DNA of 64,000 nucleotides from Adineta vaga. Its lineage: Eukaryota > Animalia > Rotifera. A model generated the notes under the pieces. The model was not told where the DNA came from and ran no database searches. It saw nothing but the letters and a program-made list of their open reading frames with translations. Shown here one piece after another: positions 848-22,670 of the stretch. Numbering within the stretch: the first letter of the stretch is position 1; every line of letters begins with the position of its first letter. Made by a program: the position numbers and the translations under genes. The DNA lies in contig CP075494.1 in assembly GCA_021613535.1 (NCBI GenBank), positions 10,912,001-10,976,000 on the forward strand. Direction: 5' to 3'.

Positions 848-952
848 GTGTTGCTCTGGCAGATCAATGTTACCATCGATCCGCTTGATTTCGTCATCGC
901 AACATGTATTTTATCTTTTTCGATATATACCTCTTGGTAAGTTGTAATAAGC
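848..952 (-). ncRNA. Spliced-leader (SL) RNA gene, class A (22-nt exon GCTTATTACAACTTACCAAGAG)
   Basis: Exon 952-931 followed directly by a GT donor; 105 nt to the conserved GAGCAACAC end; matches the recalled bdelloid SL exon and SL RNA length. Confidence 0.92.
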
Positions 953-1062: not shown

Positions 1063-1170
1063 ACTTATTACAACTTATACCAAGAGGTAAACGATCTTAC
1101 CAAATCAAACGCATGTTGCGATGACGAAATAACGCGGATCGATGGCGACATTGATCAGCCAGAGCAACAT
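1063..1170 (+). ncRNA. SL RNA gene, class B (24-nt exon ACTTATTACAACTTATACCAAGAG)
   Basis: Variant exon 1063-1086 plus GTAAAC donor; same 3' domain (TGTTGCGATGACG...CAGAGCAACA) as class A. Confidence 0.85.
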
Positions 1171-2609: not shown

Positions 2610-2718
2610 GTGTTGCTCTGGCAGATTGGTGTAAGACACCAATCCGCATTTTATCGTCATCGCAACATGTCTGTGATCTAGTGAGATCATTTACCTCTTG
2701 GTGTAAGTTGTAATGAGC
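2610..2718 (-). ncRNA. SL RNA gene, class C (24-nt exon GCTCATTACAACTTACACCAAGAG)
   Basis: Exon 2718-2695 plus GTAAAT donor; 3' hairpin GCGGATTGGTG/CACCAATCTGC. Confidence 0.83.
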
Positions 2719-2850: not shown

Positions 2851-2957
2851 GCTTATTACAACTTACGAAGAGGTATATATCGATATGGAAACAAATACAG
2901 GTTGCGATGACGATATCATGCAGAATGGTGTTTTACTCCGATCTGCCAGAGCAACAC
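2851..2957 (+). ncRNA. SL RNA gene, class D (22-nt exon GCTTATTACAACTTACGAAGAG)
   Basis: Exon 2851-2872 plus GTATAT donor; conserved GTTGCGATGACG...CAGAGCAACAC. Confidence 0.83.
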
Positions 2958-3711: not shown

Positions 3712-3820
3712 ATGTTTCTCGGGCGGATCAGTATTAATCATCAACCCGTACGGTTTCGTCATCGCAACATGTGTTTGATCTAGTAAGATCGTTTACCTCT
3801 TGGTGTAAGTTGTAATAAGT
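3712..3820 (-). ncRNA. SL RNA gene, class B, with a diverged 3' half (possibly decaying)
   Basis: Exon ACTTATTACAACTTACACCAAGAG (3820-3797) plus GT; many substitutions in the 3' hairpin and terminal stem. Confidence 0.65.
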
Positions 3821-3935
3821 AACTTGATTCAATGATATTCTGTACATATCTGACGTATGTAAAGAAAAGAAAAGAAAAAAAGAGAAAGTGTAGAGACACG
3901 CTAGAGGGCGTGGATCCTTGACTAAGGAGAAAGTT

Positions 3936-3966
3936 GCTTATTACAACTTACCAAGAGGTAAATATC
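3936..3966 (+). pseudogene. SL RNA gene class A, 5' part (exon and donor), interrupted by the retrotransposon
   Basis: Perfect exon 3936-3957 plus GTAAATATC, then unrelated sequence; the rest of the gene resumes at 9051. Confidence 0.92.
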
Positions 3967-9050: not shown

Positions 9051-9125
9051 ATCGAAAAAGATAAAATACATGTTGCGATGACGAAATCAAGCGGATCGAT
9101 GGTAACATTGATCTGCCAGAGCAAC
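9051..9125 (+). pseudogene. SL RNA gene class A, 3' part after the insertion
   Basis: ATCGAAAAAGATAAAATACATGTTGCGATGACG...CAGAGCAAC is identical to the class A intron. Confidence 0.92.
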
Positions 9126-9636
9126 TTTTTTCATTATCAAATATAAATAAAAAAGATAAGAGGGAGAATTGACAGTAGTGTCAAAATTGAACTTTATTTT
9201 AGAGAAGATTGTGTAAATATATTCAAAAACAATCAACATAGTATTAGAAAAATAAAAATAAAATCTATTTCTGAAAAAGTCTGGCAATTTAGCCATTTTT
9301 AAAATCACACGTCCAATAGTGTCAAGTCATAGTGTATTCAAATTGTCTTTTGTACATTTTATTACATCAAAGAGAGTGATCTTTCAGTGTGAACGGGCGT
9401 TGCTTTAAAACAGAATTATTGCATTACATATTTTTGTTTGTTTGGCGTCTAAATATATCTTCGAACAGCATCGTGGTCGCGTCTGTGGCACAGAAAAATA
9501 TGCATAACTATATCTCTTTCTTCATTTGTGACCGTTTGACCTTATTTATTATTATATAAAGAGGCAAATAAGCGAGAGAAAAAAGAAGTTTAGACTACAA
9601 TTCATATCTATTAAAATAATTACACAAAGTATAAGA

Positions 9637-12174: not shown

Positions 12175-12282
12175 ATGTTGCTCTGGCAGATCAGTGTTAC
12201 CATCGATCCGCGTAATTTCGTCATCGCAACATGTGTTTGAACTAGTAAGATCATTTACCTCTTGGTGTAAGTTGTAATAAGT
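12175..12282 (-). ncRNA. SL RNA gene, class B
   Basis: Exon ACTTATTACAACTTACACCAAGAG (12282-12259) plus GTAAAT; intact 3' domain. Confidence 0.85.
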
Positions 12283-12416
12283 AACTTTATCTGGAGAGTG
12301 TGAAGAGAACGATATTGTTTTAGTCTATACATATCTGACGTCTGTAAAGAAAAGAAAAGAAGTGTAAAGTGCATGGACAAAGTAGATGTCGTGGATGTTT
12401 GATCATGGAGAAAGTT

Positions 12417-12521
12417 GCTTATTACAACTTACCAAGAGGTATATATCGAAAAAGATAAAATACATGTTGCGATGACGAAATCAAGCGGATCGATGGTAAC
12501 ATTGATCTGCCAGAGCAACAC
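12417..12521 (+). ncRNA. SL RNA gene, class A
   Basis: Exon 12417-12438 plus GTATAT; 105 nt. Confidence 0.92.
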
Positions 12522-12799
12522 TTCTCGTAATCAAATATAAATAAAAGAAAAAATATCAGGATTAGCTTATATTCATTAGTAATGCTTAAGAATGAGGGTG
12601 AATTTGGAGCACGTAATAAACGTCCACACCTATTACATCATCACTCGTTTTTATATTTGAAATGAATACCAAAGCATTTCATGAGATTATTTGAGAAAGG
12701 TTTTAGAATGGGTTCAGAGATAATGTGAGAATATTGGTAGAAAAATTTTGTGTCATTTTTATAAAACTGTTCGACGACAAAAATAAACTATCCAGGTGG

Positions 12800-16162: not shown

Positions 16163-16267
16163 GTGTTGCTCTGGCAGATCAATGTTACCATCGATCCGCT
16201 TGATTTCGTCATCGCAACATGTATTTTATCTTTTTCGATATATACCTCTTGGTAAGTTGTAATAAGC
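16163..16267 (-). ncRNA. SL RNA gene, class A
   Basis: Exon 16267-16246 plus GT; 105 nt. Confidence 0.92.
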
Positions 16268-16401: not shown

Positions 16402-16509
16402 ACTTATTACAACTTACACCAAGAGGTAAATGATCTTACCAGATCAAACACATGTTGCGATGACGAAATTACGCCGATCGATGGTGACATTGATCAGCCA
16501 GAGCAACAT
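16402..16509 (+). ncRNA. SL RNA gene, class B
   Basis: Exon 16402-16425 plus GTAAAT. Confidence 0.85.
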
Positions 16510-19769: not shown

Positions 19770-19874
19770 TTGTTGCTCTGGCAGATCAATGTTACCATCG
19801 ATCCGCTTGATTTCGTCATCGCAACATGTATTTTATCTTTTTCGATATATACCTCTTGGTAAGTTGTAATAAGC
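19770..19874 (-). ncRNA. SL RNA gene, class A (empty-site paralogue of the interrupted gene)
   Basis: Exon 19874-19853 plus GTATATATCG; both flanks match those of 3936/9125. Confidence 0.92.
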
Positions 19875-19989: not shown

Positions 19990-20097
19990 ACTTATTACAA
20001 CTTACACCAAGAGGTAAATGATCTTACTAGTTCAAACACATGTTGCGATGACGAAATTACGCGGATCGATGGCGACATTGATCAGCCAGAGCAACAT
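19990..20097 (+). ncRNA. SL RNA gene, class B
   Basis: Exon 19990-20013 plus GTAAAT. Confidence 0.85.
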
Positions 20098-21538: not shown

Positions 21539-21647
21539 GCGTTGCTCTGGCAGATTGGTGTAAGACACCAATCCGCATTTTATCGTCATCGCAACATGTC
21601 TGTGATCTAGTGAGATCATTTACCTCTTGGTGTAAGTTGTAATGAGC
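21539..21647 (-). ncRNA. SL RNA gene, class C
   Basis: Copy of 2610-2718. Confidence 0.83.
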
Positions 21648-21779: not shown

Positions 21780-21886
21780 GCTTATTACAACTTACGAAGA
21801 GGTATATATCGATATGGAAACAAATACAGGTTGCGATGACGATATCATGCAGAATGGTGTTTTACTCCGATCTGCCAGAGCAACAC
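21780..21886 (+). ncRNA. SL RNA gene, class D
   Basis: Copy of 2851-2957. Confidence 0.83.
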
Positions 21887-22565: not shown

Positions 22566-22670
22566 GCTTATTACAACTTACCAAGAGGTATATATCGAAA
22601 AAGATAAAATACATGTTGCGATGACGAAATCAAGCGGACCGGTAGTAATACTGAACCGCCAGAGCAACAC
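22566..22670 (+). ncRNA. SL RNA gene, class A exon with an altered 3' hairpin; the partner SL gene and shared spacer are missing
   Basis: Exon 22566-22587 plus GT; hairpin GCGGACCGGTA-GTAA-TACTGAACCGC. Confidence 0.8.

Follow-up and report, generated by a model that had tools for sequence, protein, structure and literature searches.

INTRODUCTION

What holds the particle of a spliced leader (SL) RNA together when the RNA has no canonical Sm site? The question is raised by a gene cluster of the bdelloid rotifer Adineta vaga, found in a 64,000-nt stretch of contig CP075494.1 (assembly GCA_021613535.1, positions 10,912,001 to 10,976,000, forward strand) that we term the window; coordinates below are those of the window unless a locus or contig is named. 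To our knowledge, every SL ribonucleoprotein (RNP) characterised so far has been described as Sm-class, and this is a main argument for the descent of SL RNAs from the Sm snRNAs. The bdelloid RNA resembles the Sm-class SL RNAs of nematodes, flatworms, Hydra, tunicates and trypanosomes in being a short capped RNA with a leader exon and multicopy genes, with the splice donor embedded in stem I and with two or three stem-loops. Those RNAs carry an AU-rich Sm site between stem-loops (PMC7986045), in place of which the bdelloid RNA has a putative kink-turn motif.

MATERIALS AND METHODS

Genome and window. The genome examined comprises 6 contigs (100.8 Mb); the window lies on contig 5.

Gene census. 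Genes were collected by the leader exon followed by GT alone, without use of the intron motif, because collection by the motif would have been circular; the census is thus unbiased with respect to the intron. It holds 152 distinct sequences, 51 from this genome and 101 from JGI/ENA metagenome contigs. The metagenome scan returned 102 contigs, which evidently come from wild bdelloids.

Alignment. Alignment A1 has 133 rows; one row made up of gaps only was excluded, and the position profile is given for the 132 motif-bearing sequences. Since the alignment filter itself fixed several core positions, the sound statement of core conservation is the census figure, a complete motif in 143 of about 146 recognisable SL genes.

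RESULTS

A cluster of SL RNA and U2 genes

The first 23 kb of the window hold a cluster of eight U2 genes and 15 SL RNA genes or gene parts. The leader exon is matched eight times in the window, and the exon pattern 56 times genome-wide. Both halves of the intron's 3' motif recur in the window, the half-motif GTTGCGATGACG in 15 copies against a chance expectation of 2.85 (≤2 mismatches) and the half-motif CCAGAGCAAC in 14 copies against 1.0 expected; a degenerate two-part pattern for the motif is found at 64 places in the genome and at none in a reversed control. The SL copies of the window sort into four leader classes (A-D). Their 3' domains are listed here, those of the genes assigned to a class being placed by half-motif and leader-class matches.

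12465-12520, plus strand: 3' domain of the focal gene, exactly UGUUGC ... GCAACA
12176-12231, minus strand: 3' domain of the head-to-head partner gene, with a 24-nt leader of class B
849-904, minus strand: 3' domain, class A
1114-1169, plus strand: 3' domain, class B
2611-2667, minus strand: 3' domain, class C
2900-2956, plus strand: 3' domain, class D, with a 5-bp stem
3713-3769, minus strand: degenerate copy with box C intact and the 3' half altered to CCGA and GAAAC (from the leader-class sort and the census)
9071-9126, plus strand: 3' domain of a gene split by a Tx1-type insertion (retrotransposon), its exon at 3938
16164-16219, minus strand: 3' domain, class A
16453-16508, plus strand: 3' domain, class B
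19771-19826, minus strand: 3' domain, class A
20041-20096, plus strand: 3' domain, class B
21540-21596, minus strand: 3' domain, class C
21829-21885, plus strand: 3' domain, class D
22614-22669, plus strand: 3' domain, class A, with a compensated hairpin variant

The sequence AAAGTGTAAAGTGCATG (window 12350-12380) precedes the SL start by about 40-65 nt. It also recurs upstream of SL genes on contigs of two other organisms and is therefore likely to be a proximal promoter element.

Searched with Rfam, the window gave U2 as its only match at the gathering score. A match to MIR821, an Rfam plant miRNA precursor (40 bits, E 5e-6, gathering score 249; window 12187-12503, both strands), was rejected as an artefact of the long inverted repeat that the head-to-head SL gene pair forms.

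Anatomy of the focal gene

The focal leader, GCUUAUUACAACUUACCAAGAG, lacks the first G of the published rotifer leader, GGCTTATTACAACTTACCAAGAG (PMC3795323), and otherwise equals it. An exon that is a published trans-spliced leader, a GU donor directly after it and multicopy genes together identify the product as an SL RNA. Its parts, all on the plus strand, are the following.

12417-12438, plus strand: SL exon, 22 nt templated, followed by the GU donor at 12439-12440
12444-12457, plus strand: stem-loop II, UAUC / GAUA with a 6-nt loop (MFE fold)
12458-12464, plus strand: A-rich single-stranded linker AAAUACA, moderately conserved in alignment A1
12465-12470, plus strand: C-stem 5' strand UGUUGC (-6b to -1b)
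12471-12473, plus strand: 3-nt bulge L1-L3, GAU
12474-12478, plus strand: G1b and A2b (12474-12475), C3b (12476), G4b (12477) and A5b
12479-12484, plus strand: AAUCAA, the remainder of a 7-nt 5'-strand bulge, its first two A conserved and the others variable
12485-12510, plus strand: 11-bp hairpin with the GNRA tetraloop GUAA at 12496-12499
12511-12514, plus strand: C4n (12511), A3n (12512), G2n and A1n (12513-12514), together CAGA, box D-like
12515-12520, plus strand: C-stem 3' strand GCAACA
12521-12527, plus strand: 3' flank, CTTCTCG in the focal copy

Written in kink-turn nomenclature, the -1b:-1n pair is C:G, the bulge L1-L3 is GAU, the tandem pairs are G1b.A1n and A2b.G2n, 3b.3n is C.A and 4b:4n is G:C. 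L2, L3 and positions 12474-12478 together read AUGACGA, which is box C-like. AUGACGA departs from RUGAUGA, and CAGA from CUGA, at one position each, and both departures sit on the 3b.3n partners. An initial annotation of the window had described a motif UGUUGC-...-GCAACA at 12465-12520 with this arrangement and a stem shortened to GUUGC/GCAAC in class D; every positional detail of that description proved correct, and the class D stem is indeed of 5 bp (GGUUGC).

Conservation of the 3' domain

The full 3' motif is present in 143 of the 152 exon-collected sequences, and there is no intact gene among the nine exceptions. Four of these (L054, L072, L080 and L074:1825) continue downstream into sequence unlike any SL intron, the exon at window 3938 is truncated by the Tx1 insertion, L149 is a copy with an internal deletion, and the remaining three (window 3768 on the minus strand, L009 and L010) are degenerate copies. 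The degenerate copy in the window spans 3713-3840 (minus strand) and is mutated on the box D side and in the stem; L009:1409-1528 and L010:1409-1528, on contig 6, have no box C segment and carry the leader variant UAUACGAAGAG. All three are probably pseudogenes. These counts, from the genome and the bdelloid metagenomes, bear out conservation beyond one species. One further locus, L043 (G000:C3:6912738-6912788), shows the 3' domain, its hairpin compensated, but no leader exon could be recognised upstream of it; a truncated gene and another kind of RNA built on the same module are the two alternatives.

Core positions hardly vary. GUUGC and CAGA are each unaltered in 143 of 143 motif-bearing sequences, no otherwise intact gene having been excluded for a change in GUUGC, and the tandem GA stands at the required positions on both strands in all 143. 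Nine positions are invariant in the alignment (n = 132), namely L2 (A), L3 (U), G1b, A2b, G4b, C4n, A3n, G2n and A1n, and 5b is A in 131 of the 132. Variation within the motif is confined to L1 and 3b. At L1, 109 sequences have G and 23 have A; at 3b, C stands in 129, and the three others, with U, have a perfect box C, GAUGAUGA. In the terminal stem, all 660 cells of the five inner pairs are paired. The only substitutions seen there (GCGAC, GCAGC and GCAAU) all lie on the 3' strand and turn a Watson-Crick pair into a wobble pair; changes that keep the pairing are as RNA-level pairing predicts and also argue that the 3' strand belongs to a functional RNA.

Stem-loop II and the long hairpin, by contrast, diverge widely between genes. 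Stem-loop II differs between lineages, with both-side changes in three of the four helix 1 pairs. In the 133-row alignment the hairpin has 276 cells with both partners of a pair changed, where shuffling gives 79 ± 18 and none of 500 shuffles comes up to the observed value; its pairing is 93%, against 24-48% when the partners are slid. Covariation is strong in helices 4 and 5, which form the long hairpin, so that the earlier statement of a fixed motif around a varying hairpin stands. The hairpin is capped by GCAA, GUAA or GAAA in most sequences, with a few UUCG-unlike exceptions, and a conserved GNRA loop adjoining the putative kink-turn suggests docking or a protein contact.

Fit to the kink-turn and box C/D consensus

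All kink-turn features that can be checked in a sequence are present: a C stem ending in C:G, a 3-nt bulge with L3 = U, tandem G.A/A.G pairs and 4b:4n = G:C. The 3b.3n pair is a non-Watson-Crick C.A (or U.A) and is followed by the invariant G-C. The closing pair -1b:-1n, C:G in all sequences here, is most often C:G in kink-turns, and box C/D motifs of archaea and humans strongly conserve G:C at 4b:4n (PMC5689011). Mg-induced folding is favoured by C at 3b, provided that its partner is not G (PMC4382518), and the crystal structure of a Kt-7 variant with C-A at 3b,3n shows a kink-turn of the N1 class (PMC4914095). A free L1, a fixed U at L3 and a fixed second GA are together what would be predicted of a Snu13-type kink-turn.

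Box C is matched at six of seven positions in 129 sequences (AUGACGA) and at all seven in three (AUGAUGA), and CAGA, present in all sequences, agrees with box D at three of four positions. A box C/D-like pattern (RUGANGA and CNGA with an adjoining stem of at least 5 bp) arose in 7 of 20,000 dinucleotide shuffles of the SL RNA, and a generic kink-turn pattern with a stem of at least 5 bp in 2.7% of shuffles.

Inspection of the alignment showed neither C'/D' boxes nor a guide region in the SL RNA, and what precedes CAGA is the covarying hairpin's 3' strand. The RNA is therefore not a methylation guide, and the label box C/D snoRNA would be wrong; the motif would work like a terminal C/D (or U3 C'/D) module only. 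Among the Rfam box C/D families, searched up to E = 10, the only matches were insignificant ones to snoR30, sR17 and sR14 (E 4.7-7.9).

Candidate binding proteins are available, as the genome encodes several L7Ae-family genes. Nop-domain proteins are encoded by the three expected gene types; the genome was also searched for an extra, SL-specific Nop56/Nop58/Prp31-like paralogue, and the three types were all that was found. The core, being invariant, has no covariation, so comparative data fit a kink-turn and a sequence-specific protein site equally well. Conservation also goes beyond what a kink-turn needs, taking in all of GUUGC/GCAAC and ACGAAA, and this argues that more than Snu13 constrains the region.

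Comparison with U3 and U4 of the same genome

The Rfam U3 model finds two genes in the genome, L159 and L160, at 131-132 bits. The C'/D motif of L160 reads CCAC-GAU-GA-C-G-A with C-U-GA-GUGG, its boxes being GAUGACGA and CUGA (L160:1575-1595, 1708-1728); that of L159, on the minus strand around 1650-1635 and 1515-1500, reads CCAC-GAU-GA-U-G-A with C-A-GA-GUGG, its boxes being GAUGAUGA and CAGA. The pair that varies between the two U3 genes is again 3b.3n. AUGACGA and CAGA thus each occur in a U3 C'/D motif, which means that both deviations of the SL RNA are found in a bona fide box C/D-type motif. In our view no other single argument speaks as strongly as this sharing of box variants for the SL motif as a working member of the same structural class. 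Both U3 genes have a T6-T8 tract about 15 nt downstream.

The likeness to U3 C'/D extends over the whole arrangement: a terminal-type stem abuts the GAU bulge, GA, N and G-A, and the other strand reads C-N-GA. U3 also comes, like the SL RNA, from an independent gene with a downstream T-tract and shows the same box variants. Unlike U3, the SL RNA has a leader exon and a splice donor, has neither a B/C motif nor an rRNA-pairing 5' domain, has C.A at 3b.3n, and continues after stem II into a 7-nt bulge and a long GNRA-capped hairpin.

The kink-turn of this genome's U4 reads CC-AAU-GA-GC ... GC-GA-GG. U4 is the spliceosomal RNA for comparison: its -1b:-1n pair is C:G as in the SL RNA, its 5+2 loop AAUGA/GA is identical in 17% of the SL genes, and its kink-turn is bound by Snu13/15.5K and then by Prp31. 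The two RNAs part at 3b:3n, which is Watson-Crick in U4 and C.A in the SL RNA. Beyond it U4 has a stem II of 2 bp capped by a pentaloop, and the SL RNA a single G-C pair followed by a bulge and a helix of 11 bp; only U4 carries a canonical Sm site.

Sm site, linker and downstream U-tract

AU4-6G occurs in 3 of the 152 sequences, twice in the variable loop of stem-loop II and once in a retrotransposon-interrupted copy, and RAU3-6GR in 2 of the 152, never at a conserved place. Because AU4-6G is this rare and confined to variable or interrupted regions, there is no conserved canonical Sm site across bdelloids. The canonical Sm sites of the same genome are AGAUUUUUGG in U2 and AAUUUUUG in U4. The initial annotation had reported AU4-6G as missing from the SL RNAs of the window and present in the neighbouring U2; it is absent from every intact SL RNA of the window or the genome, and the neighbouring U2 has AGAUUUUUGG.

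The linker, AAAUACAUG, is conserved to more than 90% at several positions but has no uridine run, and neither AU4-6G nor RAU3-6GR occurs in it (12458-12464). Something Sm-like at a fixed place is seen in a single lineage, a metagenome one (L092:1053-1162 and 1615-1723; L074), where the linker preceding the terminal stem is U-rich, AUUAUUUUCUUG, and reminiscent of the long Sm site of schistosomes, AGUUUUCUUUGG, quoted in PMC7986045. A literature search for an Sm site in rotifers found nothing specific.

Directly after GCAAC most genes have the flank A-Y-TTTT, with T at 84-93% at each of the four positions. Of 143 genes, 135 have a run of at least three T no more than 10 nt from the stem, and 112 a run of at least four, the focal copy being among the exceptions; A[CT]?T3-6G occurs in the flank of 4 of the 143. 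The tract may signal termination or processing, and in a precursor its A-Y-UUUU could be a binding site for La, Lsm or even Sm proteins. Transcription by Pol III, which the T-tract would suggest, was judged unlikely: about a fifth of the genes have fewer than four T in the tract, nothing TATA-like stands some 30 nt upstream in the copies read, and an RNA that donates a leader must be capped.

Mature 3' end

Public assembled contigs covering the focal stretch run into the flanks, and the position of the mature end accordingly rests on length arithmetic. From G+1 to three nucleotides past GCAAC the distance is 106 nt in Adineta-type genes and 107 nt in most metagenome genes. The 2005 description of the rotifer SL RNA reportedly gave a length of 105-106 nt and is said to have named a 'putative spliceosome-binding motif'. 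Set against that length, the measured span would put the mature end at GCAACA or GCAACAC, 1-2 nt past the stem. An end 1-2 nt beyond a terminal stem is typical of box C/D RNAs. A length of about 100 nt, with a 23-nt leader, is given for the rotifer SL RNA in PMC1925144.

DISCUSSION

The observations describe a 3' domain that is nearly universal among bdelloid SL genes, encloses a covarying hairpin, shares its box variants with U3 and belongs to an RNA with no canonical Sm site. We take this domain as a candidate for a real, conserved box C/D-type kink-turn on grounds of sequence. Three other accounts of the same data have to be weighed.

The kink-turn reading of the initial annotation fits every position that a sequence allows to be checked, but energy models favour a straight register, and RNAalifold, MFE and centroid folds all choose it (-28.8 kcal/mol, z -4.8). 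In that register the tandem sheared pairs would join the first GA of GAUGA to the GA of CAGA, immediately on the stem, and U-A and G-C pairs would come next; there would be no kink and no L7Ae-family protein, and ACGAAA with the next nucleotides would be a 10-nt bulge serving as the sequence-specific site of an SL-specific protein. The unusual A at 3n is what makes the U-A pair possible, and the invariance of ACGAA(A) suits a single-stranded recognition site. Energy models, however, cannot score kink-turns, and the same ambiguity of register is common to every box C with GA at L1-L2, the U3 of this genome included. Where L1 is A, as in 23 of 132 sequences, the G.A pair of the straight helix becomes A.A, whereas a kink-turn leaves L1 free. 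A straight helix would also reduce the match to box C (six or seven of seven positions) and to box D (three of four) to coincidence. As an account of the functional RNA it seems to us rather improbable, although the modelled register is a live rival or, possibly, an unkinked ground state.

A stronger competitor, though still an unlikely one in our judgement, is a particle that remains Sm-class (or depends on Lsm or La), with the linker AAAUACAUG or the precursor's A-Y-UUUU recruiting the ring and the kink-turn as an addition. U4 of the same genome has just this combination of kink-turn and Sm site; the high conservation of the linker, the presence of T3+ in 135 and T4+ in 112 of 143 flanks, the resemblance of the L092/L074 linker AUUAUUUUCUUG to the schistosome site (PMC7986045) and the spliceosome-binding motif reportedly proposed in 2005 point the same way. 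Against it, the linker has no uridine run, the U-tract has no 3' G except in 4 of 143 genes and lies beyond the probable mature end, and AU4-6G is missing from 149 of the 152 census sequences, while the U2 and U4 sites of this genome are textbook ones. Conservation at the DNA level, as an internal promoter, terminator or 3'-box element with no structural meaning for the RNA, would explain why both halves of the motif are invariant in sequence beyond what pairing alone demands, and why a T-tract is conserved downstream. Yet the halves are perfectly complementary, the sole substitutions are A-to-G or C-to-U changes on the 3' strand that keep a wobble pair, the enclosed helix covaries, and the element lies inside the probable mature RNA; we consider this account very improbable.

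On balance we therefore favour a box C/D-type kink-turn on the terminal stem, most likely bound by an L7Ae-family protein (Snu13/15.5K by default), as the element that would do the work of the Sm site, and we think this reading probable. Under it, a Pol II transcript of snRNA type would be made, and an L7Ae-family protein, by default Snu13, would capture the terminal kink-turn. Further proteins would read the fixed stem, ACGAAA and the features of the GNRA hairpin, and the 3' extension with its U-tract would be trimmed back to the protected stem. The kink-turn would thus be a module of assembly and stability, protecting and fixing a 3' end 1-2 nt past the stem in the manner of U3 and other capped box C/D RNAs, and a particle with no canonical Sm core would deliver the capped leader to the spliceosome. 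Joining by Nop58/Nop56, with cap hypermethylation through them, is speculation. The complete proposal, a bdelloid SL particle that dispenses with Sm proteins and is built on a Snu13-bound kink-turn, a U3-like module having been grafted onto a leader exon so that 3' end, stability and possibly cap come by the snoRNA route and not by SMN/Sm, is more tentative, and we rate its chances as somewhat below even.

SL RNA is a known class of RNA and the box C/D-type kink-turn a known module; what may be new is their combination, which we have not found described. Full-text searches returned no literature linking SL RNAs with kink-turns, Snu13/15.5K or L7Ae. Telomerase RNAs have lineage-specific biogenesis modules, Sm in yeasts and H/ACA in vertebrates; they offer a parallel, by analogy only and with no relation in sequence, of one functional class that uses different RNP modules in different lineages.

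Pipelines that search for SL genes with an AT{4,6}G filter, as SLIDR does by default (PMC7986045), would reject the SL genes of bdelloids. The bdelloid SL particle may be built differently from all other known SL particles. If so, the function of donating a leader can sit on a different RNP chassis, which would bear on how often SL trans-splicing arose independently and would offer a concrete model for the origin of a new SL RNA. Since the box C/D motif directs hypermethylation of the U3 and U8 caps in vertebrates, it would also raise the question of which cap bdelloid mRNAs carry.
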